A stretch of 64,000 nucleotides of DNA, from assembly GCA_964252035.1 (NCBI GenBank), contig OZ176206.1. The stretch is one strand, 5' to 3'. Shown here one piece after another: positions 3,213 to 39,200 of this stretch. Made by a program: the position numbers and the translations under genes. Source of the DNA: Podarcis erhardii. Its lineage: Eukaryota. The notes under the pieces are model-generated. The model searched no databases. It was not told where the DNA came from and saw only the letters and a program-made list of their open reading frames with translations. Each line of letters opens with the position of its first letter. Positions within the stretch are counted from its first letter, which is position 1.

Positions 3213-3239
3213 GAGAGCGAGAGAGAGAGAGAGAGAGAG
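3213..3239. repeat. (GA)n microsatellite
   Basis: Direct reading. Confidence 0.9.
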
Positions 3240-11033: not shown

Positions 11034-11039
11034 TCAGAC

Positions 11040-11260: not shown

Positions 11261-11673
11261 CTCTTAGTAAATGCGAACGACTAGGATGTGCTTCATACGG
11301 AACTTTTGAGAGGAATGGCATCAGCGTAGACAGGCAGATAGCATATTAATTGGTTCCTAACCTGTATGGAAATGATGGATTGATTTTTTGGGGGTGTATG
11401 TATGATATATTCCCACTCTTCAATATAAATTATATACACATACACAAGTCTGAGAAGCTGATACACTAATATATACTCAAAACAATTTAAAAAATCATAA
11501 AAGCATAACCATTTTAACACAGATTGAAAATAATAAAACATATAAAGGTAACTATATATGTCTAGAAAGGCTTACCAAAACAAAAAGTCTTTAAGCAGGT
11601 ATCATATAGGTAGGAGGATGCGTACCTTATGACAATGGGTATGTGTAAGGACTCTGCTGGCAGGGAGGCTTTC

Positions 11674-12380: not shown

Positions 12381-12441
12381 GCAGGGAGGCTTTCTGGATC
12401 CAAGAAGGGGACCATCAATATTACCTAAGAATATCTTAAAA

Positions 12442-12751
12442 TAAACCACAGAGCCTAGGGCTTGCCGATCAGAAGGTTGGCAGTTTGAATCCCCACAACG
12501 GGGTGAGCTCCCATTGCTCGGTCACTGCTCCTGCCAGCCTAGTAGTTCGAAAGCACGTCAAAGTGCAAGTAGATAAATAGGAACAGTGTTTCCGTGCGCT
12601 GCTCTGGTTCGCCAGAAGCGGCTTAGTCATGCTGGCCACATGACCCGGAAGCTGTACACCGGCTCCCTCGGCCAATTAAGCGAGATGAGTGCCACAACCC
12701 CAGAATCATCCATGACTGGACCTAACGGTCAGGAGTCCCTTTACCTTTACC
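12442..12751 (+). mobile_element. Sauria SINE, slightly 5'-truncated
   Basis: TAAACCACAGAGCCTAGG...CACATGACCCGGAAG...CCCTTTACCTTTACC; near-identical to the copy at 9851-10202. Confidence 0.9.
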
Positions 12752-12834
12752 TATGTGTAAGGACTCTGCTAGCAGGGAGGTTTTCTGGATCCAGGAAGGG
12801 GACTGTCAATATTACCTAAGAATATTTTAAAATA

Positions 12835-13075
12835 CAGTGGTACCTCAGGTTACATACGCTTCAGGTTACATACGCTTCAGGTTACAGACTCCGCTAACCC
12901 AGAAATAGTGCTTCAGGTTAAGAACTTTGCTTCAGTATGAGAACAGAAATTGTGCTCCGGCAGCACGGCGGCAGCAGGAGGCCCCATTAGCTAAAGTGGT
13001 CTTCAGGTTAAGAACAGTTTCAGGTTAAGAACGGACCTCCAGAACGAATTAAGTACTTAAGCCGAGGTACCACTG
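12835..13075. mobile_element. Tc1/mariner (Tigger/pogo-like) MITE
   Basis: Terminal inverted repeats CAGTGGTACCTC / GAGGTACCACTG with TA on both flanks. Confidence 0.85.
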
Positions 13076-15164: not shown

Positions 15165-15385
15165 CAGTGGTATAGTACTTAATGGTTACGTACTTAATTC
15201 GTTCCGGAGGTCTGTTCTTAAACTGAAACTGTTTTTATCCCGAAGCACCACTTTAGCTAATGGGGCCTCCCACTGCCGCTGCCAGATTTCTGTTCTCATG
15301 CTGAAGCAAAGTTCTTAACCCGAGGTACTATTTCTGGGTTAGCGGAGTTTGTAACCTGAAGCGTATGTAACCCGAGGTACCACTG
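15165..15385. mobile_element. Tc1/mariner MITE, same family, opposite orientation
   Basis: TA|CAGTGGTA ... GAGGTACCACTG|TA; internal sequence is the reverse complement of the 12835 copy. Confidence 0.85.
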
Positions 15386-18473: not shown

Positions 18474-21083
18474 GCCACTTCTTTGAGGGAAAGAACGTCA
18501 TATTCATGTGTGTTTATTGTCACCAAAGGCACCTGATCAGATGGTGGAAACAAAGTTTTCAGATAAACAAATTATTTTTTTCATTTTTTTCCTTTTGGAG
18601 ATTGGAGGCAAAACAGGCCTGGTGGTGCAAGAAGTTTATGGACTGAAAAAAAGTTATGTTTTACATGATTGTCCTTATTTATATCACGTTCGCAGCAATC
18701 CTCTGCAGAATTAAGTGGAAGCAAACCTCACTGAACACAGTTATATTGACTTTGAGGCAAACATCCATGGGAATGGGCCACTGTATCCTAATTTCCTGAA
18801 CCACAGGTGACATGTTCCTGCTCCTAAGTAGTTTAGTGTATGAGTTCAAAACTGTCTCCCATGAATACATAACAATTGATTGTCTGTATTGTGGTGGGCC
18901 ACCTCATCCAGAACTGTTTCACGAAGTGGCTCTGGGAAGCTCTCAGATCAGAGCTGACAGAAAGCACCATCCCATGTCTGTCTCAAGCAAGTACACTCAG
19001 GCATTGACAGCTGGCCACCCCATTAGCCTCAAGCAGGCTTCACCACTGGATGCAACCAGATGTTGTGGACATGGCTCTTATAAGCCCCAGCATCATATGA
19101 CCATGCTGCCTGGGGTTCATGGGAGCTGAAGTTTGAAACATCTGGAGAGCAACGGGTTGGCAAAGACTGTCCTAGGGTAAGCAATGGCACCACTTGAATG
19201 GGCTGTGCTGTTGGGCCAGTGCTACACAATCCCACATAATTCTTCAGTTACTATTAAAAAGAAAAGAAAAAAGATAGAAACTGTTTTTTTTCTTCTTCTG
19301 AGAATGCCACTGCCTTTATGAGAACAGTTTCTACACAACTCCTAGTTGGGAGTCCTGGGAAATAAAGGCTTGGGATGTGTGTGACTTACTCATTTCTGAC
19401 TAGCCTGATAAGACCCAAGATGGACCCCACCACTGTTGTCTTCCTCCTACCCCTTTCCCTCAGTGGCTGTCAAAGAATATGAAGGGGGAGGGAATTCCAC
19501 AGATCTCTCTTGGGCCTCAGCTGAAACTCCCCATTCCATAGCTCACTGGAAGAAGAATGAGGAAAAACACATACTTATACCAGAGCCTGCCAAATGGAAA
19601 ATTATAAAACAGTGGGGAGAGGAGCATGATTGACACACAAATAAATAACACTTAGAATGAGACACGCTGTTTAAAAAGAAGGGAAGTTTTCTTTTCGCTC
19701 CATTCCTACTGCAGAAGTTATGACAAGCAACAGCTGACATCTTGTCAAAGTTGTTGGATCCAGTATGTCCCATTGAGTTCAATGGGCCTGCTCTTACGGC
19801 TGTCTGGATCCAGCACCTTATTTGCTGCCAATAGCTACAGCTGCTCTCTCCAACTCTTTTTCTGCATAACGTGAACTGGTGAAAATGTGCCTCCTTTAGC
19901 TTAATAGATAGTGGTATAATGGTAAATTCTGTAGTACAAGAGCTCATCTTGACACAGATAAATTTATAAGTGATGAGAATAAGGTGGTGCAATTGGGGCA
20001 GAGTGAGGCAGCTGCCTCAGGCAGCAGGGTGGGCAAAAAAAGAGGCAAGTGGAGCTCTCAGAGGGTGAGCTTGGTCTGGCAGATGACCATCTTCTGTAGA
20101 AACAAGCCTTTTTCACAGTCTTTCTAATTTACACATGGTGGGCAAGCAATTCCATTGGTGGGCATTTAGCCCTCTCGGTACCCCACCCTTCCCCAGTGCC
20201 ACCTGTATCCCAAATATTTTATAGCATAAAGGAAGGAAGGCAACACCTCTGCTATCTTTGTTATCTGCAAACAGAACATGCAGCACCCAGAAAGGGAAAT
20301 ACAACAACCTTTCAAACATTAATTAAAAAGTAATTCCCAACTACAGCGTTTGAAGCTTTCATGATTTGCAATTGCACGTTTAATTTTTTTAAAAATACAC
20401 TTTTCCAACAGGACTAGATATGACAGTGCTGCAAGCAAGCTATTTCTGGAACTCCGCAAGGCTATGGAAATGCAAAGCTCACACTGAATTTTAAACGGAT
20501 ATTTTGCTTGTGTAGTAAGAGCACAGTTAGGTTCTCTTTAAGCGGGTGACAGCAGGTGTTTATTTTAAATGCAGAACAGGTAATTTATTGGTGTTCCACC
20601 CATGTGCTCTGTTCCCTGCGGGTATCCGCCCTGGCCAAGGATAGTGTTCATGATTCATGTAATAAAACCAGTTTAACAAACCCGTTCTAGTGCCCAAGGT
20701 GAAAGAGTCCTACACGTGAGGTGTTTCACCATGTTTAAATGGCTGTTCCACTTTCATTACAGCCTTTTGGAAGCATAACAATGTGACAACTTTCCCCAAA
20801 GACTTTTTGAAAGATCTGTTAGTTGTGCCAAACTAGAGCCTAACAGCAACCTCCAGTATGTGAATAGTCCAGCATCATGTTCTCATGATGAAGAAGGTGG
20901 GCATCCCTACCAGCTGGATCCATGATGTGACTTGTATTGTTTTTGATGTTTTAATCTTCTTATTGACTTCATGTAATTTCGAGTCAGTATTTTGCTACAC
21001 CCTGCTCTGGGATTATTTTAGTGAAGAGCAGAACATTTCCCCATCCCTGAGCTAAGCCCTGAATGTTATAGGAAGTGTGTGCC

Positions 21084-21132
<49 letters not shown>

Positions 21133-21226
21133 TATTTATTTATATCCCGCCCATCTGGCTGGGTTTCCCCAGCCACTCTGGGTGGCTTCCAACAAAATAT
21201 TAAAAATACGTTAAAACATCAGTCAA
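21084..21226 (-). mobile_element. 3' tip of an L2/CR1-type LINE with an (AAT)n tail
   Basis: About 16 AAT units followed by TTTATATCCCGCCCATCTGGCTGGGTTTCCCCAGCCACTCTGGGTGGCTTCCAAC. Confidence 0.7.
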
Positions 21227-22683
21227 ATAATAATAATAATGCCTGTTTTGTAGCAATACACTCTGCCCAAGCAGGTCTCTGGCCATTACTTCCTTCATAC
21301 CTATGACCAGACTAGATTCAAGTGGGGGAAAACCATCCATGATGCCGTTCATCTGTTGGCCAGAGCCAAGGCTAAACGGGTTAACCCTCAAGCCTTTGCT
21401 GGATTGCCAAGAGAGGAATCATCACCCGCTTCCTAGTCCTGCTCTTCAGCACCCTCTTGTGGGATATGTACACACAGCCGCTTAAAGTGGATTCAGTGCA
21501 TCCACACATTGTCCTCATCCAAATGGCAGCCTGAATCCTACCCACAGCTGCTTTAATTTGGATTTCCCCAATATACAGATAACGCAGCAAAGGATATAAA
21601 GAAAATTTCGTAAGGGGAAAAAAGGCCAACATTGTGTGGACGAGTATTTTTATTATAAAAAAAACCTGGTGATGTTTTTTCTGGATGTCCTCTATTAATA
21701 CCCTCTGTTACTAAGTCCTGTACTTTCATTGGCAAACTGCCTCCATAGGCCTGAGGCAACACACTCACTTTTTTAAAAAAACACTGTTTTGTGCAAGTGT
21801 GGTATATCGGAAAACTAATATCTCAAAAATTAAAACAAATTGCCCAGTTCACAACAGGCCTCAGTTTTCCAGAACTCAGGGAAGATGGAGAATAACTAAT
21901 TAAGAGAAAGGAACAGCAACAGGTTGATTTCGGTAGACAACCTGTTTATTGAATGTTCTTCCTGATTTGTTTGTGGGAAGTTGTATGATACCTTATCAAG
22001 CATTTTTTTTTATACCACACTCTCCAGGGCATTGCCCCAGCGCTTTCCTTACTGCAAAAATCCCTTTTTATTTGGAAGCAGCTTTCTTGTGTAAGAGGGC
22101 CCAATCCACTTGAACTGCACCACCTCAGTTTGCCAGGAATGTATTGAAGTCCATGCCCAAAACAGTAACAGCCTGGAGACAGGTAATTAATAAATAATAA
22201 TAATTTTATTATTTACATCCTTCCCATCTTGAACCATTAATGGTGTTTGTACTCAATTCTTTCCTTCTACTCTTGTCTCTGGTTGACCAGGTTTGCCAGG
22301 TTTTTGAAAGGGGGGGGGGGAATAAAAACTTTGTTTACTAAAAGCAAGGTGAGCACAGTCAAAAAAATTTACCTGCCTCCAGCTCCAGCCTGTTGTTGTC
22401 ACAGGTCCTGTTGTTTTGCAAACCACACTTCCCCAGCCAGCTGCATTCCTAGCCTCCCCTTCCTGCAAATGTGAGACTGGGGAGCCAATGCGAGAGCAAT
22501 AAACCTGGGAGTGAGGAGGAGGAGAACATGGCAGCACAGTGAGAGAAGCAGGAGCAATTGGTATCAGATCAACCTCCTTTGGAGGGCATTATTTTATACT
22601 AATCGATAGGAACACATACTTTTGAGGGTAACTTTAATTATTTAATTATTTAACAAAAACCACATGCCACTTGATTGTAATAA

Positions 22684-22757
22684 AATATCTAAGTGGTTAA
22701 TTAAAATTAAAGTCAAACAATATCTAAGTGGTTAATTAAAATTAAAGTCAAACAATA
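22684..22757. repeat. Exact 35-bp tandem duplication
   Basis: AATATCTAAGTGGTTAATTAAAATTAAAGTCAAAC x2. Confidence 0.95.
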
Positions 22758-23533
22758 GGAGACTGTTAAAAACAGGAATTAAAAACATTCAAAAGATAAT
22801 GTTCCTGTGTGCTGGTGGAGATCTTGAATTTCACTCCGATTTCTACAGCAGAACTGTTGCTATCCAACCACTGTGATCAAAGAAGCGCATTCAATATATG
22901 AGGCTGAAAGCAGGGGTTTCTCCCCAGAAAGGCTGCTGTGTGTTTGGACTATATTTTTAAAGGGAAACAACATGCAATAATGCAAAACAGCCTGGGACTC
23001 CAAGGTCACATTTGACATACATCAACCCTCTCCCAGCTGGTGCCCTGAAGATGCTTTGGACTACAACTCCCATCAGTTCTAGTATCACAAGGTTGTGCCA
23101 GCTGGGGACTAGGTGAGTTGTAGTCCAAAGGGTACCGGCTTGGGCAAGGCTGGTATGCATAATTTTAAAGTGAGAATAAAGTAGAGAAGCTTTCTCTGGT
23201 GATGGTGTCCACACTCTGTTTAAGATGGCAAAAAATAATCTCAAATTTCACTGGAACCTATTTCCAAAAAGATTGCAGATGTGATCTATTCCTATGTGCC
23301 CTCCCAACCACAATCTCGGCCCACAAGCTTTGTCATCCTCCTTTTCCTCCTAGAGTCAAATTTCCCTGCCCAGTGTTTGTGGAAGCTGCCCAGCTGCCCC
23401 CTTGATTTCCATGGGCAAACAGAGACACCGGGAGGGCTTGGCCTCTTCCTTCTCCTGTGTTTCATGTGGGCTTCTAGCCAGAGGAGCAAGCAGATCCCTG
23501 CTGGGACCATCTTGCCTATCCTGCCAGGTTGAG

Positions 23534-26500
23534 ATGGCACTGAGGCGACAGACAGCTCCCGGCTTAGCCCTGCTGCTCTGGGCCCTGTGCAGGACTGCTG
23601 TGCCTGTCACCACGCCTGAGGCTGTGCTAAGGGAGCACCAAGGACATTGCTACCAGCTTGCTCAGGAAAGACTGGCTTTTGAGGATGCCCAGGCTGCCTG
23701 TGGCCGATGGGGAGGGCACTTGGCACAGGTCCCTTGGGAGGTGACAGGGACGTGGGGTGCTCTGAGAAGGAGGAGGGGGCAGCTGAGAGGGCCCTCTGGA
23801 GGCTGGTGGGTCTCCAAGGGCCCAACCAAGCCTGCGGTGGCAGGTAAGTCAGTCCTGTGGGGGCACCAGAGAGGGCTGGGCAGAGGTGGGAAGTTGTTTC
23901 TACTCCAGAGGGTGGAGGGTGTGTCCTGGTTTCTATCACAAAGGCCAGGTCCCTTTACACAGCTGACTTGGCTGTGGTTAAAGGCTGGGATTTGGGGAGC
24001 CACATTGAGGGGCAGGGTGTGGAGGTGGGGGGCACTGTGCTGCAGAGAGCTGGCTCTTTTGCTTGTAGTGTAGAATTCTGCTTATTTTCATCTGCTCTGT
24101 CAAGGGCATACCACCCCGCTCTGCCTACTGTGGTCAGATCTTACAAGAGGGCAAGGCCCTCACCTTGCCCTGCCCAGCTTGCCACCATGCCCATGGCAGC
24201 CTCTTATGTCTTTGCCCAGGAGCCCAGCCTCATCTGCATGGGGCTCACCATCAGCCCCCCACCTGCACCTTCCTCTCCAACCTGGGCCTGCTGCAGGAGG
24301 CTACCGGGCCCACGTGCCGCCAGAGGCATCCTTTCATCTGCGAATTTGGTGAGAGGCCAGCTGGGCTGCCAGGGTGGGATTGTGACACCCCCACTCCACC
24401 CCACCTCTGAGGACAGAGATGGCTCCTCCTGACCCAGGAGGGGCTCCCTTTCAGGATGGTCCTTTTTGCAGGTCCTGTGGAGGGAGGTGAATGCCCAGTC
24501 AAAGTGGCCAGGAGTGCCAACAGCTCCAGGCCTTGGCAAAAACAGAAGGCTCAGCTGGTAGGTGATGGTGGCCAGTTCTCTTCCCTCCAAGTCCAAAGCA
24601 AATAGGCTTTCCCTCCTGCTGCCTGAAACCAAACTCCAGCAGATGCACCAAGGCAGAGGATGGGGGGGGGAGCAATAAAAACAGCCTGTCTGCCACCTCT
24701 TAGCCACCCTCCAGACAATTCCTTTGGGCATGATTCCTGGGCAAGCTCCTAACAGGGAACCCTTTGCCCTGCCCCTTCCAAGAAAGCCTATTGGGTGACA
24801 TATCCTACCTGGCACAGTGGCACTGCTCTGTCCCACTCTTTTTTCTCTGTCTGCCTCCAGGATCTGACCTCCATGGGGCGGAGGCCACAAAGGCTCATGC
24901 GGCGGCATCTGGGTGATAAGCAGAAGTACCCAGGTGATGTGGGGATTTATTGATTTCTGAAATAATGCATTGAAGAGTAGGTCATCTGCAATTATAAGCA
25001 ATTGTGAGAGGCTGATCATCTTGGGTCATTCTGCTTATTTTAACAAACCCTTTAAATGCGCTAAAATAATATTTGTGCGGCTGAAAGGGGTATTTTATCT
25101 TATTTCTCATAGACCATCTTTTCCAAAAGATTGTAGATGTCAGCACAACCAAAATATATGCTTTCAATCTGCCTGTACAGAATTACAACTCCAACATTTA
25201 CCAATGGTGTTTAAGCTGTGCCCAAGGGGCAAGGCACCCGTGATTAACTGTTTTTAACAAGTTTTATTTCAGATAAACTTTTATTGCCATGTTCTACCTC
25301 TTCCATGGAAAGAGCCTGAAGCAATGCTCAGGATGAAAATAAGCAACTGTAATAATGTAAAAGCGGGAATATAACTAGTAGCCAGTGGTTCCCTTATCAT
25401 GAGGCTGATCCTTTTGCTGGTCAGGGCAGTGGTTTTCCCCTGAAAGGAAGCAGCTTGTTGAGACAGGCTCACCGCAAGGAGTTTGTGTTTATGGAGGCCA
25501 AAATGCCTGTTTCTGTGTAGGGGGACCCTGAGGGGAGAAAAGACTCTTGCTCATACTTCTCCTCTTGCCTCCAGAGACATCAGCAATCAGGGAGGCCTTG
25601 CAGGATGTTGTTCCCAGGACCTGGCAGCAGGTAAAAGAGCCCCACTGGGAGGGAGAATCTGGGGAGGGGACCCCCTTCAGCCCAGCCCCATTGAGGCCCA
25701 CAGCAGAGCCACCAACCTTCCTCTGGCTCAAGACAGCCAACCTCTCTTCTGGTGGTTAGCACAGGCCTTATGTAGGCCGGGAATCCCTTATTCAGTGATC
25801 TGCATTTGCCTGCCAGCATTTGAACCCAAACTCCTGATTCTGCCTGCAGGAGCTGCTCCAGCGACTGACACTGCCGGTGAACAATGGTGCCTGGAGTGCC
25901 TCTGAGCTGGTATGATTGGGCCCATGGGGAGGGCGGATGCCCCAGAAGGGACTGAGCCCCAACTCCAAAGGCTGTGTAGCTCCCATGGGGAACCTGAAGA
26001 AAGAGTCAGGCCAAGTCCTAAGAAGCTCTTTCCTCCAAGAGAGGTGATGGGGAACATCTCATGGAAGGAGTCGAGGGACCCCCATTAGTGCTGAGGGTCT
26101 TGGGCAATGAATGGGCATGGAGGAACATTAATATTATGTGCCTTTGCGTGCCAGGAAGAGGAGGTGGGGTTTCTTCAGGCTGTCAGTGAGGACCTGCTGA
26201 AAAGGAGGCCTCCAGCCTCCCCACACTGGCACCTCCTCAACCTCCTGGCAGTCCATGGCACCAGCCGGCTCCTGCAGGTTATTCTGGGCCCCTGCTCACC
26301 CAACGTCAACATCCAGGTGAGGATATGCCACACTCCCGGGTGCCCTGGTGGGGAGGGACAGGCCGGTGCATGGGTCCCTTCATCCCATATTGCCCCATCT
26401 TGGATGGAGATTGAGTCCCCAGTAACTGCCCACTTCTCCCTCCAGCAGCATGAGGCCCTGACTGGCACCCTGATGCAGATCCTTCACAAGCTGGAGCAAG

Positions 26501-29500
26501 CTCTTCAGGAACTGGGGGGCAGCAGTGATGCCATCACCATGGAGACGCCTCTCATCAGCATCTATACACACAGGTAAGCTACCAGGCTTGCAGCCACTGG
26601 GTAACGGGGAAGGTAGGAAGCTTGACTGGTCTGGGAAGGGAAGGGAAGGGAAGGGAGAAAGATCTTGGCAGGAAGTGTCCAAGGGAAAAGGCCTTGAGGT
26701 AGCCATCTGACCTTCCCTCATCATGGCAGCTGGCTCACATTTGCCTGGCTGTCCTGCAGATTGGCAACTCTCCTGAGGCACCCTGATCCCAGGCACCATC
26801 TGCTGTGCCCTGGCTCTAACCCTAACTCTCTTTGTCTCCCTGGCTCAGGGTGAACTCTTCCAGGCTGGGCAATATGGCGTTCTCCTTCCCTGGCAACCCA
26901 TGGGCAGCCAGAGTCATTTTGCCAGAGCAGTCTGCGCTGGGCGCCGTCATGCCACAGAATATCCCAGTGGATGTGCAGGTAAGACGGAGCAGGAGTGTGT
27001 GGCTGGCCCTCTCCTTTGGACTGGGCACAGGGGCCTTCCCTTTCCATGGAACGCAAACTCTCCTCTGGCATCTGCTGCTACCCCAGGAGGAGAAGGAAGG
27101 TAGAGAGCACCCAGGCAACAAGTCACTTGCTGTGCTGTGGAATGCACTGGGGCCCAGCACTCAGAAGTGACTTGGCTCCTTCAAATCAGCCTGATGATGC
27201 ACCCAGAGGCATCTTCACTCCCTCCCTCTTCTGGAGCCTCATGCTTCTGGGTTGGACTCCAAACATTTCATGACACCCCCCTTGCCAACACCCCTGCAAC
27301 CAAGGCCCTCTGTCTTGGCCCTACTCAATCTACCTACCCAGTGCTTCCAACAGTAAGCAGCCATGTTTCAAAAAATGGGGAGCAGAGCGTGAGGGGGGGG
27401 GGAGCGCCCAGCCATCCTGCCGAGTGTGGCCATGTGGCCGAGCAGGCATGGCTGGTGGGTCAGGCCCCCTCAGCAGTGGCGCTGCCCTTTCTTCTTCTCT
27501 CCCTCTCTCTTTAGATGGTGAGCTTCCTGGGCAGCCCCTTTCCCCCGAGCTCTGGGGAAGGGGTCCCAGGAGCTGTAGCTGAACTGAACCTCCTTTCTGA
27601 GGGCAGCCAGATCAGCGTTAGCAACCTGAGCACCCCTGTCCAGGTATGTCCTGCCTAGAGACTTTGGGCTGAGTGGAGCCTTCCTCCCTGTAAGGGGGTG
27701 GGCTATTGAGCATCTCCAGAGGGCAAGGACAGCCCTCCAGGATCATTTCTCATGGCAGGATCTCATAGTGTGGAGATCAGCTGGATTAGCCACCAGGTAA
27801 GCCAGCCGCTTAGCCTGGGAGAGCCTACAGTACAGGGTCTGGTCTCTCTGTCATCATCCTTCCCTCTCTCCCGCCGCAGCTCACCTCCATCAGTGAGGCT
27901 ACCTCTGCTCCGGGTGAGAGCCTGAGGCAGCTGCTCATCTCACTGTGGTGGTGCAGTAGCAGCCAGTGACATCCTGCTCTCTTTTCCTATCCCAGATTTT
28001 CCTGCCCCGGGTTGGGCCTACAGCCCCTGCCGAGCCAGCTGCCTTCCTCTCTCCAGGGGAGGCCCTCCTTCTGACTGCGAACGTGACATGGACAGGGGGA
28101 TCCCTGATGATCCACGCTCACCTGGACCCTGTGGGGCCTCTGGAGCTCTTCTTGCAGCCAAGCGAGCAACTCCGGGAGCCCATTGAGCCCAACGTTGGCC
28201 TGGGTATAGCAGGGGGACAGAAGAGCTGGCTTCTGCTTCCACTTTTGGCCTGGGGAGTGTGAGGACCTCTTCCTAAAATGGTTAACCTTTTGTGTTGCCC
28301 CCCCCCCGCCCCCATCTCCTGCAGATGGCTACACTTGGCTAGTGAAGGAGGAAGTTCTTCGTGACCTGAGAGGAGCCCTTCAGTTCCTGGTGGTGCCACT
28401 GAACCTCTCTGCCAGCCAGGGTCCTGCCACCTTACATGTCAGCACCTATGGGATCCAGTGTGTCTCCCGGCACCTGCCTGATGCCCAGTGGCGAGAGGCA
28501 GGCTGCAAGGTGAGTCTTGGCGTTCAAGAAACAAAGGAAATCTGGGTACCAGAGGCAGGGAAGAATCAGAATAGCTGCCTCTGGTCCTTAATAACACTTC
28601 TATCCCATTTCAAGACCATACTGCCTGCTTCTTTATTTAAAGCATCTGGATCTCTGTTTTGTGAAAAATATCCAAGGTGATCTGCTGCCCAGAAGCGCCC
28701 TTAATCCCACCCTGTTTGCAGGTAGGAAAGAGCAGCAGCCTGGCGGAAGTCCACTGCCTCTGCACCCACCTCTCCTTCTTTGGCAGCAGCTTCTGGGTGG
28801 CGCCAGTCCAGCTGGATGTGGTGCGCACAGCAGAGTACTTTAGCCAGGTGAACAAGAACCCAGTTCTGGTTGTGGTCCTGGGAGTCGTCTATGCCCTCTA
28901 CTTGGTGGGGGTGGCCTGGGCCCGCTGGTTGGACACACGCCCCCTGCACCAGGTAAGTTGCTGGGGGTGAGAGGGCCGGAGGTAAGGGGGGGGGGTCTGG
29001 CAGCAAGCAGCACAAACTCACATGCCCTTGGCAGATCTTAGGTGGTGATGCTCTCAGAAGGGCAGGTCATGCAGCAACAGCCACCATTTGGAGACTGAAC
29101 TCTTGGAGGGTCTCCAGCGGCTCTCCCATGCCATGTGGAGAATAAAGGACTCTGATCTCCACCCCCTCCACCCCTAAAGGGTGTGGCTGGCTAGGGGCGG
29201 GGAAGGCTTCTTATTTTCTACAAATGGTCATGACTGCATTTTGCTCTCTATAAACATACAGCTGAGTGAGATGCAGCTAACTCTGTTCTGTCTAACAATT
29301 CCATGTGGATTTAAGGTTTGCACATCTCTTCACCAGCAAAAGAGATCCCCTTATTCTGGTCTTCACTGGGGCCAAGTGGGAAGGACAACTGTATGTATGG
29401 GGCCTCAGCGCTCTCTGCTCTCCTGCGCTGCTCCATGGCAGAGCATGACCCTAGAAACGCCACCCCTCACACCTCTCTCCCTCTCTCAGGCAGGGCCAGT

Positions 29501-32500
29501 CCTCCTGTCCGATGATGATCCCTGTGCCCAGTATGGCTACCTTCTCCAGATCTCCCTGCATGGGCAGCAGAAGGCCCCCGGAGGCAGCCCCTGTGTGAGT
29601 GGTCTGCCCTGAGTGATGGAGGGGGTGGGGTGCCTGGTCTTTGCCCCAGAGCTCACCCAGCCCTTTCATCTCCAGCAGGTCTGCATCTGCCTGCAGGGAT
29701 TGTCTGGTGTCAGCAAGCCTCGGCGCCTGCGCCTGGATGCCAGCCTCTTCCTCCTACGGGAGCCATACCCACTGGGAGAGCTCCAGAGCATTTGGTTGTG
29801 GCAGGAGCCCCACTCCGCTCCACAGCTGCCCTGGTCAGTCTGCCCAGAAGTAGGGTGGGCGGGTCACATCCCACTTGGAGACATTGTGCTGGCATGCGGA
29901 CACTGTCCACCTCCCATGGCTTGGCTCTGGGTGCCAGCCTGCCTCTGCTGGATATGCCACAATTCTCCCTCTCTCTGAATGGGGCAGAGGTGGTTATTGT
30001 GTCAGGGTGGCCATCCTCAGGCACCCTGAGGAGGTGGGGCTGGGGGCGGGTCAGCAGCACACCCGGCACTCGTCCAGCAGGGAAGCCTCCTGCCTCTGCC
30101 TGACAGGACCTTCTTCTAAGTGGGGCACTAAGAGCACCAGCCTCCTGCCTGGCACTCATTACCCATCCCCTTCCCTCAGGCATATCGCCTACATCACAGT
30201 TCGAGACCTGCAGCAAAGTAGGAGGTTCCATTTTTCTTGCCAGCCGTGGCACGTCCCAGCAGCAGGGGCCCCACACAGCACTGCCCAGCATTTCCTAGCA
30301 TCTCCACAGCACCAGCCAACAGCATTCTGGTAGGCTTACCAAGAGATGGGGGAGTCTGTTTGGGTGTCCTCAGCCCCCACCTGCCCACTGTGCATGAACT
30401 TAGCAGGCATCTCCAAACCGCCTCCTCCCAGCCAGAGCTAGAGACTCCAGCTGTCTTCCTCCTCTGGCTCTCCCATAGCCTGGCCCACCCACCCATCTTC
30501 CGCTCTCTCTGCAGGCCCATCTTCCGGCAAAGGACCCTGAATGGTCTTCGGGAGGAGCACACAGTGCTGACAGTGCTGCTGACCCGGACAGGCCACGGGC
30601 GGCTCATCACGCGGGTCCAGGGCCTCTCCTGCGGCTTCTGCCTCCTCCTCTGCTCTGCGCTTGTCAGCCTCATGTTCTGGGAGGTGCCCCATGAGTCACC
30701 CGAGCTCCTGAGTGTTGGTAAGGGTTGTGCCACATGGGATATCTCCCAAGGGCCACTGGCATGGAAAAGGGAGCTGTGCAACTCCTCTGCTCCAACTCCT
30801 GCCAGTGGAGGAAAGTCCCTCCTGCCACAACTGGAGGGACAAACACAGCCATACCCTTTGGGCCGGCAGGAGGGAGGTTCATGCATTGTATTAGGACTTT
30901 GGAAGAGCCTGGGTGCAGCTGGATCAGGCCAACTGCGGTGGGATCTAGCCTAGCATCATGCTTCTCACACGATGGCCACCCGATGCCTCCTGGGAAGCCC
31001 ACAAGCAAGGCTCCTCTCCTACATTTGATCCCCTACCCGCTGAATTTGGAGGTATCCTGCGTCTGATTGTGCAGGTAGCAGTTGGTGCCTCCTTCCAGTG
31101 TCCCTGGGACACAAAGAGTGGTGACTGGTAGGTCCACTTGCAGGCACTTTCCCCCCCTGTTGATACACAGGCAGCTGCTTCTCCCTCTCCTGGAAGGACA
31201 TCATGATCAGTGTGGAGAGTGCCTTGATTACCTTCCCCGTCAACTTGCTCCTTGTATTCATTTTCCGCCACGCTGAACCACGCAAGAGCCATGCAAAGCC
31301 TGGCCTGGCAACAGCTGTGCCAAGTGCCCCTGCCAGCCCAACAACCCTGGACACTGTGCATGAGGTAGGGACAAGAGCTCTCCAGGACCCAGGACATTTT
31401 TCCCATTGTGCCTCCCCTTGGAATAAGGCCATGGCTGAGCTGGCAGTGGAGAAGAACCCCCACCTGATCCCCGAAGCCCCACGTCCCCCAGGATCCTTCT
31501 TGCACCAGTGAACTTGGTAGCAGGGAGACGTTTTTGCAATTGCAGATACAGCAAGCACTGGCTTGCCAGAGAGTTTTCTCTGTGGCAGTTATGGGATGGC
31601 TTTTAATAGGTAGGAGAGGATATGTTAATGGTAATTTATCCCTCCAGGTGCCCACATTTGTGGGTTGAACATACAAAGAGATCAGCTTATCGCTTCGTTT
31701 AAAACACAGGGCTGAGCAGAGTTCAAAGTCTCATCCTCAGCAGAAAAATAGAAAGCATAGGAAAAGGCTGTGAAGCATTCATTAAATTCAGTCCAGCCAC
31801 AAAGCAAGCTGGTTGCCCCTTAACAAAGAACCAGACACAGACTGAGAAGTAAGTTTAAAATATGTTTACTTACTCATAGTCATGCAATTGTTCTCAGCAG
31901 CAACAGCAGTAAAATACATGCAGGCAAAATACTTATATTTACAGTATGAACAGCTTGAGGCATGTGGCCAATGCTGGAGTGAGAGGATATATGTCTGCTC
32001 CATTGTTGGTTGAAGAGAAAAGAGAGAGGGAAGGAACAGGAAATACCTTGATTCTTCATTCCCAAGAGAGGAGGGGAAATGACCCCACACAGAACCATCT
32101 CTACCAATTACATTTCTATGGTCCGAGTCTCTCTATCAATAATGTGACCCTATGGTCTTAACGCCTTCACATGCTAACTCACAAAAATATGGATTGTTAG
32201 ATTTGGCTGCAAATCTCCCACAGCACTTCTCCCATCTGCTACATCTTCTTGTGCCCAGCTTTGCCCACCTTACCCTCAGCCAGTTGGGTGCATTTGTGCC
32301 CCAGTCGTCTGCCACTCTCCCGTCTACCCGTGCTTGTCTTTCCCTCCCTAGAGCCTGCGTGGGGCAGTGGAGACGCTGAGCAAAGCCAGCAAGCAGAGCC
32401 AACAGCTTCTACATCCCGACATGGACCTTGAGGAGCTTCTGCAGTGGCTGGCTCGTTTTATCCATCCTGATCCTGGGGAGGAAGAGGAGGCAGCAGGTGA

Positions 32501-33943
32501 GAGCCCAGCCATGCCTGCCTGCCTGCCTGCCTTGGGCAGCCCTGCTAGACCCCCAGAGGATGGTGACGCTGTGGCTTCTGCTTGCAGGGAGGGAGCCCAA
32601 GATCTCCAGTGTGGCGCCCAGTCCTGATGTGCTGCACCAGACCTACTGCAACCGCTACCTCCTCCTGAAGCTGCGGCACATTTCCCGTCTCCTGGGGGAG
32701 CTGGAACCAGGAGTCTCGACAGCCAAGCACCCTCCGGCTCTGCAGCAGCGCGTGGAGGAGATGGCCAGGCGTCTTGAGCTAGCAAGCCCCATCCGGTCTC
32801 ACTCCATGTAGGTAGCTCAAACAAGCTCCGTGAGCAGGCAGGGAAGCCTACCCTGCAGAGCCTCCTCCTCATGCCTTCCTCTTGTTCCTCCACAGCCGAA
32901 GGTGGCACTTGCCCTGGTGGGGCGCCTGGGTGGGGTGGGCCCTGCTGGTCTCCCTCAGCGCAGTGGCCACCTTCTTCTCCTTGCTCTATGGCTTCCACTA
33001 TGGCAAGGAGAGCACCGAACGCTGGCTCATCTCCACTGCCATCTCCATGGGCCAGGCCCTCTTCGTCCTGCAGCCTCTCAAGGTACTTCCCAGCCAGGCT
33101 GAGCAAACCCAGCATTCCAGGGGGGCCTTCTCATGGGAGGTCAGGTTGCCAGACCTCCAAGTCTGATCTGAAGTCTTCAGGTTTGCCTAGTACCCTCCAG
33201 GTGGCAGGTGAAGGGCTTGAATCGCTAGATGGGTGAGAGTTCCAGTGGTGTGTGTGTGTGTACACAGAAGACTGTGTATAGAGGGTGCACACTTTGGACC
33301 AGCAGGAGCTGGATGCAAATTATAGCATAGACACTCTGGAGGACTACCTCCACCCTTCTCCTAATTAACCTCTGTCTCTAGGACCCTTGTGACTATACGT
33401 AGCAGGGTCTGTGCCCCTGACACCACCAGGGGCAGCCCCTAGGTCTCAGGTTTGGGCCCTGAAATCTCAGGGTCTGTGATACTCCTCAACTGGCAACCCG
33501 TAGGGGAAGGGACATCTCAGCAGCAGCAGCAGAAATCATGGTGCACATACTTCTTCCTCATCTCATGTATGTGTCTGCCACCTGCCTGGCTGGGACAGGT
33601 GTCTGGCATTGGAGCACTGCAAACACCCACTGCATCTCCTCTCTTCCTCCCATGAATTTCAAGGGGGTGGGGGAGAATTTAACCAAAGCACCCTCACACA
33701 TACACCAGTTTGTTGTGGTGTTTTGGCACAAAGTGAGGGGCTTGGCTCATCTGGAGAAAGGGAAGCCTGCAGATGCTCCCTCTGTTTTATGGATGGGGGG
33801 AGGCAAAATGGCTGCGGATCCTGCCCATCCCTCTTCTTCCATGAAACCCAATGCAGGTGATAAGCTTTGCCATTTTCTGTGCCCTGATACTGAAGAAAGC
33901 AGAGGATGAAGATGAGGCAGTCCTGGACCTGGAAGACCGGTAA
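23534..33943 (+). CDS. Polycystin-1-like protein, PKD1L2-like membrane region, truncated after TM5 (about 1110 aa): signal peptide, C-type lectin, GAIN/GPS, TM1, degenerate PLAT, TM2-5, short acidic tail; no TOP or pore domain
   Basis: 22 GT-AG exons with consistent phases, 3333 nt in total: 23534-23843, 24220-24348, 24472-24557, 24861-24933, 25575-25630, 25850-25909, 26155-26316, 26446-26573, 26849-26978, 27515-27643, 27996-28203, 28325-28509, 28722-28952, 29490-29594, 29679-29833, 30180-30329, 30515-30717, 31171-31364, 32352-32496, 32588-32807, 32896-33082, 33857-33943. Motifs: MALRRQTAPGLALLLWALC, CYQL..ERLAFEDAQAAC, HPFICEF, VHCLCTHLSFFGS, TRVQGLSC, LPWW...LLYGFHYG...QPLK, then VISFAIFCALILKKAEDEDEAVLDLEDR*. 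Confidence 0.8.
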
Positions 33944-34853
33944 AGGGAGGAAGGAGGCTTGCAGAAGTGGAAAGGCAGGATGAATTGAAGGAGGGAAGGG
34001 GAAAGGGGCCTCTCCAGAGAGGGTGGGGACCTGGACTGCCTCCAAGTAGAGAAGGGCAAAGGTGGCACTGAGAATGTCCCGCACCAACTGCAGAAAACAA
34101 ACTCGAGTTCAAAAAATTCCTTTCAAGACAGGGGCCAGGCAAGAGAAAGGGTTTTCAGTACTACGTCTGTTCCCTCTTCCACCTCCCGTAAGGGAAGGTT
34201 ATGCACACACAGAGAAGAATCACGCCTCTCCACTTTGGATCGGCATGACTAGGAGCCCACCTGGACCATTCCTCTGCTGCTTTGAGTGGCCTGGCAAGGC
34301 AGGCAGGCTTGGTGGAGGAATCCAGTTGCTGGTGTGGGCACCTCTGGTTGCCAAGAGCAGGTAGCCCAGGGCCTGCTCTGGGAGAGGCAGAGGATGCAGA
34401 GTGGCTACACTAGGCATCTCCTGGGCTTGCTAAACAGGAAGGAAACACATTGAACCGAAGTCCCTGCAAGGGCAGGACTGGGACTGTCCCCTGTGGAAGG
34501 GGAGAAGATTGGGGAGGGACTAAAAGGTAGTGACTGGCATGTGCACAGTGGGGGTGGAGAGGAGTCACCACCCAGTGGCAGAGCAGCTGCTTTGCAGGCC
34601 CCCTGCCTTCCTAACTCTTGACACTCCCCATTAAAAAGATCTCGAGTAGTCTCTCTTTGCTCGTGGCCTTGAAACGCCACTGCCAGTCAGACTAGAGCAG
34701 ACATATTAGGTTACCAGTAATTTAACCATCCTAAGGGACACTGCAGCTCCAGGACTGGGGCCAAGGGAGTAGAAAATATGCTGGGAAGCAGTCCTAGGGC
34801 CCCATCCTGACCCACGTCTTCAACCTCTGTGATTGCAGGCTGTGCTCTTTCCA

Positions 34854-34895
34854 GTGATGGGAGGACAACTTTCTGTGATGGGAGGACAACTTTCT
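34854..34895. repeat. Exact 21-bp tandem duplication
   Basis: GTGATGGGAGGACAACTTTCT x2. Confidence 0.95.
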
Positions 34896-35406
34896 GCGAG
34901 GCCACCTTGGCTTTTGCCACGCCATGTGCCCAAGACCTCCAATCAGCCTCTCCAACATGATGTCACCCACACCTGTACAAAGGCCAGGACCATCTCTCTG
35001 GAGGAACGGGAGGGCACAGCATGGGAGGGGGACAGCGAAGTCCCATTCTGTAACCTGCCAATGGAGCCAACCCTGAACTCACTGAGTGTTGAAAGAGTTG
35101 GGATGCAACTCAGCTTGCTGAGGGTTTGCATGAGGTTAAAGTGGATAGAGAAGGGAACCTCCAAGATTGTCTAACTGCCCTTTGATCTCTGTGATGACCT
35201 TTCCTTTACTATTAGACTGATATTCTTAGGGTTCCTGACAGTGACCAAACTTCCTGCTTCCCCCTCTTCCTTCTGAAGCTGAAGGAGAGAGGACATCTAT
35301 GGATGTATCTCTGCCGAGAGTAAAGAGCAAGCATGACTCCCTTGTAGCTTTAAGATTAATTAGCTAAAACTAGGAACTCTTTTCTATCCAAGTATATATT
35401 TCTTAT

Positions 35407-35412
35407 AATAAA
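35407..35412 (+). terminator. Candidate polyadenylation signal of the truncated polycystin-1-like gene
   Basis: AATAAA about 1.46 kb after the TAA, followed by a T/GT-rich tract, and upstream of the PKD1L3 start. Confidence 0.45.
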
Positions 35413-35730
35413 TGGAGCTTTATTATATTCCAATTTTAAGTACTCTGTGTGTGATTGCAATGAAGGCAAGCCTCCTCTCCCCAGTAAGAAGTCCATGTGT
35501 GCTGTGTGCTATCTTGCAAAGTGATTCAGCACTAGGCGCGGCCCACAGTGGTGTCTGTGGAAGCTCTTTCACTCTCTGAGGACTTCATGATTGGCTTCCC
35601 AGGGGCCCAGGCCCAGATCCAGACACCCATTCCCACTTCAAGCCCCCTGGTGGCCCCCTGGCAGTGACATGCAGTAAATTGTAAAACCTCATGTGGCTGG
35701 CTGGAGACTCGCCAGCACTTGTCCAGAAGA

Positions 35731-35960
35731 ATCATAGAACTGTAGTGTTGGAAGGGACCGTGAGGGTCATCTACTCCTACCTCCTGAGGAATCCCACTAG
35801 CACAACCTCCCTGGAAGGGGGGTCCCTTCGCCTCCGTTTAGAAACCTCTAATGAAGGGGAGTCTGCCACCTTCCTGTCTGCCCCACTCCCCAACCCCTTG
35901 AAATCCCATTTCTTGTCACCCAAACTGCTTGATTATCATACAGTTCTTCTTCGGAGGAGT
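35731..35960 (-). mobile_element. CR1 LINE 3' fragment
   Basis: ATCATAGAACTGTAGTGTTGGAAGGGACC..GGTCATCTA, the reverse complement of a typical CR1 3' end. Confidence 0.6.
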
Positions 35961-36249
35961 AAAAGGAATGGGATGTGCCACCTGGGCTCTCAACATTTGC
36001 CTGCCAGCGTGCCTTTTATGCAGCAGACAATGCAGTTGCTCCTCCTTTCTTCCTCGCAGGGGTGCAGACAATGGCATCCTCTTCTTTGCAAACAAGAGGG
36101 CCCATCTCCAGCTGGAGCGCCAGGTGCTGCACCTGTTTAGCCTCTGGGTGTGGCGCTGCTCTGCTCCTCTTTTCAGCAGCTCCCACCTGCTTTCTCAGTT
36201 CGTGGGCTGAGCGTGCACGGTGTGTGTGTGTGGGGGGGGCGGTTTAGAC

Positions 36250-36256
36250 TATTAAA
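36250..36256 (+). promoter_or_regulatory. TATA-like box of PKD1L3
   Basis: TATTAAA 40 nt upstream of the ATG at 36296. Confidence 0.45.
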
Positions 36257-36295
36257 GGGTGGCCCAGGGCCAGCTTGCTCCAAAGAGGGAGCGGC

Positions 36296-39200
36296 ATGGG
36301 GCTCCCTATAGGGATGTGGCTCTGGCTCTGGGCCGCACAGGTCTCTTCGGAGGAATCGGAGCCCGCCTGCCTGCCCGTGGCAGGAGAGGACTGCTATCGA
36401 CTGCTCCGGTGGCCACAACCCGCCTTGGGTGCAGTGATTTTGTGCGGACGATCCCACGGCCGGCTCCTCCACACGTGGAACCAGCAGATCCAGGACGCCC
36501 TGCGCGACTGCCTGGACGACAGGAGCAAAACCTGGATCGGGGCTGCAGCAAAGGCGCTCCCAGAAGTGAGCCACCCTGGCAAAGGTGAGAGCGGGGCGGG
36601 GGCGCAGAGGCCCAACAGCAGCACCGCAGAAGAGGGGCAGCAGCAGCCAATTCCAGTATACTCTCCCGGGATGTGTGTTATTCCCCACTCAGCATCTCTG
36701 ACTCGCCCAGACGCCAAACCCCTCAGGGCAAGACCGCCACCCTCCCTACACAAGGTGGGACCACCGTCTCCTCGTGGGGATCGAGGCGGGGCAGCCAAGC
36801 TTCTCACTTCAAGGGCCCAGCCAGGCCCTGCAGACCCTTCCCTCCGTCGAGGGACCCCGCCCACCAGCGTTTCAAGGACACCCAGGGTGGCAACCATCCT
36901 CCCATGCCAAGCCCCGCTGCTGATGGCTCAGCTCTGCAGTCTGTGACAGGCAGCCAAGGAGTGGGGAGGGTTAAAAATAATAATAATAATGCAAGGCTGT
37001 CCGAGGGTTTGCTACCAGGCACTCACCCTATGCAAAGGCTCCCCTTAAACCACTTGCCACCACTGGGAGACTCTAGTCTGGAGAGGGAGCGGAGCCCTAC
37101 AGGGGGCGCTCAGGGCAGCCTCAGCCGGAAAGCCTTAGCCTAAGAAAATCCCTCAAAGGCAAACAACTGGCGGGCTGGTGCTGAGTGTGGGGTGGCGGGG
37201 AAGAGGGATAACCGTGTCTGACGGCGGCGCCTACTCTCCGCAGACCACTGCAAAGTGCTCGTCCGGAATGGGGACCAGTTCTATACCAGGAGGGAGGAGT
37301 GTGACCAGAAGCACTTTTTCATCTGCCAGTCTGGTACGTGAGTCTGCCCGCCCCCCGGGGTGGGCGTTCGTGCCCTCATTCCGCACCCACAGGGGCTTGG
37401 GCAGGGGGCCTCCAGCTTCAAAGAGCGAGAAGGACCTCGTGGCTGAGCTGAGGATGAGACTCTCTGGAAGCACGCCTCTGGAAGCACCCCCCACGAAGCA
37501 CGCCCTTTCGAGGTGGCTGCAACCCCGAGGCGGCTGGGCTGGGCCGTCGCAGGTCCTAGAACCATCCCTGCCGCCCCGGAAGGGCCGCTTCCATGAATCC
37601 TCCCGAGCTCAACCCCTTCTGCTCTCTGTCCGCTACAGGCCCCCCGAGGACGCCCCGAGAGACTTCCACGCCCTGGGTGGTAAGTTCCCGCCAAAGCAGG
37701 TGCCCGCGCAGCCGTCGAACAGGAACGGGCGAAGGCTCTCTAGGCCGCCGTCGCTGCGCAGCGCCCCCTGGGCTGACCGCAGCGCACCACCGAGCAGCCG
37801 GCCCTGGTGACTCTCTCTCCCTGTCTCCCAGAGAACGACCTGCCAGCATTTGACGTGCGGCCCGACGGAGGCGACGCCCATCCTCACCGAAGAGCCAACG
37901 GCGACTGCCCCTCTGAGCGCCCAGCCCTCCGCCGCGACTCCTCCGCCGCCCAGTGCTCCTCCAGGAAGCAGCACAGTTCGCCAGCCGACCACCGCTGACA
38001 TCCAGTCATTCCTTGGGACCAGGCCAGAACTCGGCACTCCCCGCCATCCGCCGAGCAGCCCCAAGTCGGCATCCAGCACCTGGCCAGCCAGCAACAGCAG
38101 CCAGACCCGCCCCAACTCTCAGACCTCAGCCCCAGAGCCCAGCACTCAGCCGCTGCCCACCAGCAAAACCACCCCGGGGGGTACCAAAAGGCACGAGTCC
38201 AACACCAGCCCGGACTCCTTCACCTTCAGCCCTAGAGACTTCCCCCCTGAGGACCAGGGGAAGGTAGGGAGACATCTGGACTGGCACCTGCCCCTACCCT
38301 GGTGGCACCTTGTCCAGACAGGCTCTCCTCTCTCTCGGTCCCATACCCCACACCCTGCTCCGGAGATGCCAGAAGGTGGGGGTGTTGTGTGCGTTGCAGG
38401 ATTCTTCCTTTGCACCTGGAAAAACCAACGCTGAGGTGCAGATCAAAGATGAGTGTGACTTGTATGTGATTTCCCAGGGATCCAAAGTCACTTAGTGAGT
38501 GATTTCCAGACTGGTTTTGCCCACAGCAGAAAGGGGGGCAAGTGGCTCTGGGGAGGCCTAGCTGCCTTTTCAGGTCTTCCCCCTATAGGGTAGAGGAGCC
38601 TTCTTAGAATTAGAGATTTAGCAATAAGCTCTACTTGCAGGCTCACTGACAGCATAATAGGGCAACCAGGCCCCCTTCTCCCCCACCCCCTCTCACTCAG
38701 GGTCTTCCCACAGGCCCTAGAGAAGGTGCTGCACCAGTTCAGCCAGGCTGTGCAGACCCCAGACCACCCTATGGCACTGGAGCAGGCAGCCCGGATGCTG
38801 GAGAATTTGACAAATTTCCATGCTCTGCTTTCAGACGATGCCCAGGTACTGGCATGTGGCAGGGAGGGAAGGAGGGTGGGTGGGTGGCACCCCTGATCTA
38901 AGGGTCTGTCCCCTGCGGCCTATTCTCCCAGTCCTTGGTTGAACCAGGCTCTACCCAGGCTATGTACAGAGGCAAGCCTACCGCTTGGCACAGCCAGCCT
39001 CGCCCTTGCACCCCCAAATCAGCCCCACCAGATGATCAGCCCTGCCTTGTTCCTACAGGCCTCTGCCAGCCAGGCACTCCTCTCCCTGAGCTCTCAGCTA
39101 CTGAGGGACCACCCTGCCAGCAATACCTCCTGCCTAGACCTCGCATCACAGGCTCTTTTCCAGGCCCTCAGCAACCTCCTCCAAGCCTCAGGCAGCCAGA

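Follow-up and report, generated by a model that had tools for sequence, protein, structure and literature searches.

A channel-less polycystin-1-like gene in tandem with PKD1L3 in the lizard Podarcis erhardii belongs to a family found from bichirs to lizards

Results

Gene structure of T

We analyzed a stretch of 64,000 nucleotides (nt) of contig OZ176206.1 from Podarcis erhardii (GenBank assembly GCA_964252035.1), referred to below as the window; it contains no N runs. On its plus strand, the window carries at positions 23534 to 34857 a polycystin-1-like gene without a pore, to which we gave the working name T, and, about 2.4 kb away on the same strand, a full-length PKD1L3 (36296 to 53005). 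T was modeled with a purpose-written splice-aware protein-to-genome aligner, guided by P. muralis isoform X1 and by the P. raffonei, Lacerta, and Pogona proteins. The resulting model has 23 exons with consistent phases, separated by GT-AG introns of 81 to 987 nt, and its open reading frame (ORF) encodes 1116 amino acids (aa). The first 22 exons (23534 to 33939; 3332 nt, about 1111 codons) are identical to those proposed in an earlier note on this DNA, which had joined them in matching phases into a single frame. The Pogona isoform X2 (P0003) was tried as a mapping guide and rejected. It reads the GPS/TM1 exon (TM, transmembrane segment) and the first PLAT exon in a frame unlike that of all other family members, probably as an annotation or alternative-splice artefact, and this deviant frame gave false frameshifts in the spliced alignment.

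The gene starts with an ATG at 23534 (MALRRQ...). Exon 1 (23534 to 23843) encodes the signal peptide and the first half of a C-type-lectin-like domain and ends in the donor CAG/GTAAGT (the slash marks the exon boundary); this exon and its junction are identical in the NCBI models of Zootoca and Pogona. Exon 2 (24220 to 24348) completes the lectin-like domain (...C..FICEF), and a linker follows in exons 3 (24472 to 24557) and 4 (24861 to 24933, 73 nt). After exons 5 (25575 to 25630) and 6 (25850 to 25909), the helical subdomain A of the GAIN domain begins in exon 7 (26155 to 26316), followed by exons 8 (26446 to 26573), 9 (26849 to 26978), and 10 (27515 to 27643). The GAIN beta subdomain lies in exon 11 (27996 to 28203), whose donor (TGG/GTATAG) is the weakest in T, and the first part of GAIN/GPS in exon 12 (28325 to 28509, 185 nt). 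Exon 13 (28722 to 28952, 231 nt) holds the GPS motif CLCTHL/S, the stalk, and TM1; cleavage at HL/S is predicted between positions 28772 and 28773. The PLAT domain starts in exon 14 (29490 to 29594), continues in exon 15 (29676 to 29833), which is preceded by an intron of 81 nt, and ends in exon 16 (30180 to 30329). TM2 and TM3 are encoded by exons 17 (30515 to 30717) and 18 (31171 to 31364), a cytosolic helical loop by exon 19 (32352 to 32496) with further cytosolic loop in exon 20 (32588 to 32807), and TM4 together with the start of TM5 (...LQPLK) by exon 21 (32896 to 33082). Finally, exon 22 (33857 to 33939) completes TM5 and adds the acidic tail ...KKAEDEDEAVLDLED, and the terminal exon 23 (34839 to 34857, 19 nt) completes an arginine codon and contributes LCSFQ before the stop codon TGA.

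Reading past exon 22 leads to an in-frame TAA at 33941 to 33943, so that the frame would end ...KKAEDEDEAVLDLEDR, as the earlier note had proposed for an ORF of about 1110 aa. This TAA sits within the donor of exon 22 (CCG/GTAAAG), and the annotated orthologues of Podarcis and Lacerta all share the ending ...LEDR-LCS(F/L)Q, which maps to the exon at 34839 to 34857. Because these orthologues splice from the donor at 33940 to exon 23, the real C terminus of T is most likely 5 residues longer (...LEDRLCSFQ) than previously read. The codon count through exon 22 stands, and the end of the protein has to be revised. The same applies to the claim that the stop falls at the boundary between the five-TM part and the channel part: the protein is indeed truncated right after TM5, but at a conserved terminal mini-exon and not at the TAA in the donor. 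Retention of intron 22 would yield the shorter C terminus, and both versions stop just past TM5. A tail of the type R/G-L/P-x-S-x-Q also ends the T proteins of Sceloporus, Anolis, and Pogona, and the 10 lacertid NCBI/ENA models as well as the Pogona, Sceloporus, and Anolis models all end in the conserved terminal exon. The probable 3' untranslated region (UTR; 34858 to 35412) runs up to the AATAAA that had already been noticed at 35407 (35407 to 35412). The 3' region up to this signal is highly conserved among four lacertids, and L. agilis and P. raffonei also share the signal. A 21-nt unit across the stop codon of T, GTGATGGGAGGACAACTTTCT, is tandemly duplicated in the window (about 34854 to 34895), which leaves the stop unaffected; P. 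muralis, P. raffonei, and L. agilis have only one copy of this unit.

Absence of the channel half

We searched the six-frame translation of positions 33083 to 36262 with a hidden Markov model (HMM) of 12 post-TM5 channel regions, and the same interval by tblastn. No TOP, S1-S6, or pore remnant was found in it: the best HMM match had an E value of 0.78 (about 1 bit), and tblastn gave nothing below an E value of 0.4. As a positive control, the HMM recovered ten PKD1L3 channel-exon frames in the window, with E values of 2e-6 to 1e-36. The interval from T to PKD1L3 (33944 to 36262) thus holds no channel-domain remnant, in good agreement with the earlier note, which had recognized no such exon ahead of PKD1L3 (from about 36296). 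In plaice and bowfin, T has an 85-nt exon 22 and then a short terminal exon. Because these fish genes likewise end in a short terminal exon, the truncated gene plan is ancestral and not an accident of the lizard.

Domain architecture of T

The protein consists of a signal peptide (judged by eye), a C-type-lectin-like domain, a GAIN domain with GPS, TM1, a cytosolic PLAT domain, TM2 to TM5, and a short acidic cytosolic tail. Hydropathy gave five TM segments, at residues 600-618, 803-821, 847-865, 1033-1051, and 1076-1094, and 22 residues separate TM5 from the stop. Neither Pfam, applied to ten single open frames of the window, nor phmmer, applied with the TM4-5 exon to PDB sequences, yielded a useful match, because the exons of T are too diverged and not long enough. 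With the P. raffonei T protein as the Pfam query, only GPS passed (E value 7.3e-5). The frog and fish orthologues have GPS and PLAT by Pfam, and some fishes have Lectin_C as well; Polycystin_dom and PKD_channel were detected in no T orthologue searched.

The P. muralis orthologue was modeled with AlphaFold2 over the residues that correspond to 201-1116 of the window protein (37-sequence alignment, mean pLDDT 78). The model shows a GAIN domain, helical and then beta, TM1, a PLAT-like beta-sandwich (model residues 444-557), TM2 and TM3, a cytosolic loop of helices, and TM4-TM5. The top Foldseek matches of this model in the PDB were the GAIN domains of adhesion G protein-coupled receptors (GPCRs), namely, latrophilin, BAI, and CD97 (E value 3e-6); the PLAT domains of RAB6IP1, 5-LOX, and lipases and a polycystin-1/polycystin-2 complex (E value 7e-4) were matched as well. 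The set of GAIN/GPS, PLAT, and five TM segments that had been recognized from the window is therefore borne out by the model, by Foldseek, by hydropathy, and by Pfam in the frog and fish orthologues. The GPS motif C-x-C-x2-H-L-S/T is intact in all family members, and the N-terminal domain shares its cysteine and WWV pattern with the fish Lectin_C domains, the four-cysteine pattern being kept from fish to lizard.

Two short motifs vary within the family. Fish and frog T proteins have a dibasic, furin-type-like sequence R-x-K/R-R (e.g., RRRRS, SKRS, RKRR, or PKRE) after the lectin-like domain, where lizards have KVARS. Most amphibian proteins end in E-S/T-x-L/F (ESIL, ESRL, ESNL, ETMF, or ETAL), which resembles a class I PDZ-binding motif; squamate tails read ...S-x-Q, and those of teleosts are inconsistent.

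Intactness and selection in lacertids

We compared the T loci of the window, P. muralis, L. agilis, and P. raffonei. When the window protein was aligned to the other three loci, the same 23 exons were found with zero frameshifts or stops, and the indels among the four ORFs were all in-frame, single-codon events. The ratio of nonsynonymous to synonymous substitution rates (dN/dS, Nei-Gojobori) was 0.25 to 0.39 in all six species pairs (Fisher's P values of 4.6e-10 to 9.4e-08). By region, the corresponding ratio of proportions (pN/pS) was 0.15 to 0.5 for the lectin, GAIN, PLAT, TM, and loop parts; only the linker (residues 148-240) had a pN/pS near 1, with small counts. T is thus a real, intact gene under purifying selection, and the earlier view that it is no dead pseudogene is confirmed.

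Orthologues and phylogeny

When 1.8 billion representative proteins were searched by phmmer with the TM4-5 exon, the matches were a 940-aa protein of Podarcis lilfordi (97% identity) and many proteins of about 950 to 1120 aa in which the match lay only about 35 residues before the C terminus. A frog query or an 8-sequence alignment retrieved frogs only, and residues 480-1107 of the lizard protein reached other classes. The orthologues are 950 to 1200 aa long, end 30 to 45 residues past TM5, and all bear the automatic name "polycystin-1-like protein 2" in the databases. They were found in lizards (Zootoca, Sceloporus, Pogona, Anolis, and Phrynocephalus), in amphibians (many frogs, Pleurodeles, Lissotriton, and two caecilians), and in ray-finned fishes (Erpetoichthys, Polypterus, Acipenser, Albula, Megalops, plaice, clownfish, and Cyprinodon). 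Between bichir and lizard, a full-length T ORF with the same exon plan, including the dedicated terminal exon, is present in more than 30 species. Four short representative matches (P0130, P0205, P0088, and P0082) were considered as possible transcripts and rejected as invertebrate-like.

A tree of the core from GPS to TM5 was computed with IQ-TREE under LG+C20 (46 rows, 633 columns). All channel-less proteins, T of the window included, formed one clade of 19 rows (support, 100/99), which branches in keeping with the species tree. A 99/99 group united T, PKD1L3, and one unnamed pair and excluded PKD1L2 and a lamprey gene. A profile of the T family scored 674 to 737 bits against PKD1L2 and 412 to 528 bits against PKD1L3 cores. 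As the earlier note had observed, T is highly diverged from the neighboring PKD1L3 (27 to 40% identity in shared exons) and is a distinct gene. From the sequences, the T family can be placed before the split of ray-finned and lobe-finned fishes, and it probably arose by tandem duplication with PKD1L3.

Transcription and annotated models

A frog Logan contig of 5297 nt (L004, run SRR32314942) contains an intronless 1060-aa T coding sequence at 1557 to 4739 on the plus strand, with a stop after TM5 followed by 558 nt of AT-rich 3' UTR. This is a spliced frog mRNA, and T is hence transcribed in a frog. The same contig holds an intronless DHODH coding sequence at 193 to 1392 on the minus strand, head to head with T and with 164 nt between the two start codons. 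Such an arrangement points either to a bidirectional promoter that serves both genes or to overlapping 5' ends that were joined in the assembly.

Among the public lizard models, those of Zootoca and Pogona at NCBI carry the signal peptide and the junction from exon 1 to 24220. In lacertids, the annotated 5' ends (P0151-P0159) vary: the acceptor is at 24074 or 24220, exon 4 may be skipped, and internal ATGs at 24491 and about 24876 are used; the majority of these isoforms have no signal peptide. The variable stretch coincides with residues 148-240, the sole part with a pN/pS near 1.

Three public models are chimeras of T and PKD1L3. The bowfin model P0006 ("PK1L2 partial") jumps from exon 22 of T to PKD1L3 channel exons, and the models of Phrynocephalus (P0002, 2765 aa) and Pelobates cultripes (P0004, 2401 aa) join T to the entire PKD1L3. 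P0006 was considered as a full-length member of the T clade with a channel and rejected, since the bowfin locus holds two complete genes (see below).

Neighboring genes and synteny

PKD1L3 in the window has GPS, PLAT, TM1 to TM5, and channel exons. We modeled it reliably from 40424 on; 5' of this position, in the mucin-like region, the guides induced frameshifts, and this part of the model was set aside. From the GPS exons to TM5, T and PKD1L3 agree in exon lengths and phases. For example, exons 12 and 13 of T correspond to the PKD1L3 exons at 41991 to 42175 (185 nt) and 42352 to 42582 (231 nt), each with the same phase.

A full PKD1L3 directly follows T, with the same orientation, in the window, in three lacertids (Podarcis and Lacerta), in Pelobates, in bowfin (L006), and at locus L007. 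In bowfin, complete T with its own terminal exon and complete PKD1L3 occupy positions 2085 to 15780 and 19260 to 34911. IST1 follows PKD1L3 on the minus strand in the window, bowfin, and L007. Its N-terminal part is recognizable in the window at 59292 to 59597 (minus strand) as an open frame with ...KARKEIADYLSAGKDERARIRVEHIIREDYLVEAMEILELYCDL; bowfin, Varanus, and L007 show this gene order too. On the other side, DHODH adjoins T in frog and plaice, the plaice order being DHODH on the minus strand and then T on the plus strand with no PKD1L3 adjoining. DHODH was considered as the upstream neighbor in the window and rejected, as the frog DHODH protein matches nowhere in it. The upstream neighbor of T there is an open frame at 10722 to 11033 (minus strand) that looks like the initial coding exon of a CYB5B-like gene (cytochrome b5 type B). 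In Varanus komodoensis (L008), the order is DHODH (minus), PKD1L3 (plus), and IST1 (minus). T thus seems to have been lost or moved in this anguimorph and retained in lacertids and iguanians.

Discussion

A receptor module without a channel

We conclude, with a probability of about 80%, that T is a functional 23-exon gene that encodes the receptor module of a polycystin-1-type protein and nothing past TM5. This conclusion starts from the observed gene structure, intactness, constraint, orthology, and tandem synteny, and from the frog transcript. In cryo-EM structures of polycystin-1/polycystin-2 and of PKD1L3/PKD2L1, S1-S6 of the PKD1-type subunit fill one of the four pore positions. T cannot take this fourth position in PKD2-type complexes, because it has neither S1-S6 nor TOP. 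As the most likely role we hypothesize a surface receptor or adhesion protein independent of a channel: the ectodomain, consisting of the lectin-like and GAIN domains, would undergo autoproteolysis and respond to a ligand or to force, PLAT and the five-TM core would handle trafficking or signaling, and T would act independently of PKD1L3. At least in teleosts it cannot need full PKD1L3, since these fishes keep T without it. For this role, a channel-independent, HL/S-cleaved receptor or adhesion protein whose PLAT domain guides trafficking or signaling, we consider the odds to be about even. More tentatively, and with somewhat less than even confidence, we propose that bony vertebrates ancestrally had two tandem genes, a full receptor-channel and the pore-less T, and that T has persisted for over 400 million years. 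Of the two, teleosts would have retained T only and Varanus PKD1L3 only, as would mammals as far as the searches reach, and the module from GAIN through TM1 and PLAT to TM2-5 would function without a pore or a PKD2-type partner.

Several observations weigh against these proposals. The cleavage, topology, partners, and any function of T are what we infer and not what we observed. Expression of T is documented for frog only, by one RNA-derived contig. P. muralis isoforms X1 to X4 and the P. raffonei model have no signal peptide: P. muralis X1 omits the 73-nt exon 4 and begins at an ATG further inside, and in the P. raffonei model the acceptor is 24074 instead of 24220, which breaks the signal-peptide frame. 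Because annotated isoforms use internal starts, the exon 4 skip, and an alternative acceptor, many lizard transcripts may not encode the full secreted T. The squamate T lineage evolves fast, with a stem branch of 1.02 in the tree, and PLAT is not detected by Pfam in lacertid T, whereas it is detected in the frog, fish, and Sceloporus orthologues. T is dispensable in some squamates, because no T-like exon is present in the 2.4-kb gap between DHODH and PKD1L3 of Varanus komodoensis (L008, 7589 to 10001). Regarding its origin, T and PKD1L3 are sisters with a support of only 69/37, and a single clade of T and PKD1L2 was not rejected by the approximately unbiased (AU) test (P = 0.104). Because tree support is weak and the AU test is undecided, it is mainly synteny that carries the sister relation of T and PKD1L3.

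T could instead be a decaying remnant or a unitary pseudogene of PKD1L3 on its way to loss, which is the published reading of the fish copy (PMC5318412). The undetectable PLAT of lacertids, the long squamate branch, the loss in Varanus, the linker with a pN/pS near 1, and the annotated lacertid isoforms that lack a signal peptide would all fit such a decay. However, the ORF is intact in four lacertids with a dN/dS significantly below 1, more than 30 species keep the full ORF and the exon plan, a spliced mRNA exists in frog, and T coexists with an intact PKD1L3. Decay is thereby largely refuted already, and we regard it as highly improbable. A similarly small chance is left to the idea that T is the 5' part of a longer unit whose exon 22 donor splices to PKD1L3 exons, to give a protein with a channel. 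The stop first proposed does lie within a usable donor, the two genes are close together on the same strand, and the three public models P0002, P0004, and P0006 fuse T to PKD1L3 sequence. Nevertheless, exon 22 (phase 2) joins out of frame both to the homologous PKD1L3 exon at 48067, with a stop after 67 codons, and to PKD1L3 exon 2, with a stop after 19 codons. Moreover, the last exon of lacertid and iguanian models is the conserved terminal one, the coding sequence of the frog mRNA contig stops past TM5 and is followed by a 3' UTR, the two complete genes at the bowfin locus identify P0006 as chimeric, and teleosts have T but no PKD1L3.

A third possibility is that T is functional but serves solely as an accessory or decoy of the PKD1L3/PKD2L1 complex, sharing ligands through its lectin and GAIN ectodomain or binding the channel in trans. 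A receptor or decoy working beside PKD1L3, for example in chemosensory tissue, had been suggested in the earlier note. Such a role would be in line with the common ectodomain plan of the two proteins and with a tandem kept for more than 400 million years in several lineages. We nonetheless consider it unlikely, although less so than the two preceding explanations: teleosts retain an intact T without full PKD1L3 (PMC5318412), Varanus retains PKD1L3 without T, and the two ectodomains are only about 25 to 30% identical. We thus favor T as a receptor or adhesion protein that works without a channel.

If bony vertebrates did start out with two tandem genes, T would be a natural experiment on the pore-independent function of the polycystin-1 N-terminal module. 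The role of this membrane module (GAIN, stalk, TM1-5, and PLAT) apart from the channel half bears on GPCR-like signaling and on the control of trafficking. A gene encoding the module alone would offer a clean genetic handle, and T is present in zebrafish and Xenopus. Our data also correct the published view of a decaying pkd1l3 in ray-finned fishes: what these fishes kept is a different, older paralogue, and bowfin has both genes. For the lizard itself, T is an ordinary orthologue of a family already annotated. The channel-less architecture, in fish, and the annotation of the lizard gene in sister species were already known. New are the coexistence of T with PKD1L3, its monophyly from bichir to lizards, purifying selection, the terminal exon of its own, transcription in frog, and a bowfin locus with both genes.

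Comparison with known systems

Of the features of the polycystin-1 family, T has GAIN/GPS before TM1 and PLAT between TM1 and TM2, but not the six-TM channel module that brings the total to 11 TM segments. The neighboring PKD1L3 shares with T the signal peptide, the lectin-like domain, GAIN/GPS, TM1, PLAT, and TM2-5, and it has a long mucin-like N-terminal insert. Beyond TM5, PKD1L3 adds about 490 residues of channel module (S1, TOP, and S2-S6), whereas T ends shortly after. PKD1L2, whose name the T proteins bear at NCBI, is a protein of about 2450 aa with a channel domain; the best tree places it outside the 99/99 clade of T and PKD1L3, although the AU test does not reject its union with T. 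T sits at the PKD1L3/IST1 locus, which we take to be distinct from the PKD1L2 locus.

Adhesion GPCRs have, like T, a GAIN domain with the autoproteolysis motif HL/S or HL/T directly before the first TM segment. However, they have a 7TM bundle, whereas T has five TM segments with PLAT in the first cytosolic loop, and there is no sequence relation beyond GAIN. We know of no G-protein coupling motif for the T-type five-TM core. The sea urchin proteins REJ1 and REJ2 are polycystin-1-like, with one or two TM segments and no channel part, and are thus, like T, receptors without a pore of their own.

The most similar system is a fish gene. The earlier note knew of no described vertebrate gene with the architecture of T, and this does not hold. 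In zebrafish, England et al. 2017 (PMC5318412) described a "partial pkd1l3" of 1083 aa (ENSDARG00000091803; ZDB-GENE-060810-132) with Lectin_C, GPS, and PLAT but no channel domain, located beside dhodh, found the same channel-less gene in other teleosts and gar, and interpreted the fish copy as a remnant of pkd1l3. Orthologues named "polycystin-1-like protein 2" are also present at NCBI in many species. Beyond that study, we found no literature on expression or function of the fish gene or on its treatment as a separate conserved paralogue. The fish gene and T have the same architecture and size (about 1080 aa), neither with a polycystin cation-channel domain, and both are built of 23 exons, the terminal one being short. 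The corresponding proteins of plaice, clownfish, and tarpon belong to the same 100/99 clade as T of the window, so that, by way of these other teleosts, T can be identified as the lizard orthologue of the zebrafish gene. The lizard protein is much more diverged, with 33 to 38% identity to the fish and frog copies and a PLAT below the Pfam threshold, and the upstream neighbor within 23 kb is CYB5B-like in lacertids but DHODH in plaice and frog. Unlike what the remnant view of the fish gene implies, T coexists in the lizard with a complete PKD1L3, which argues that it is no remnant of that gene but an old, separate paralogue.

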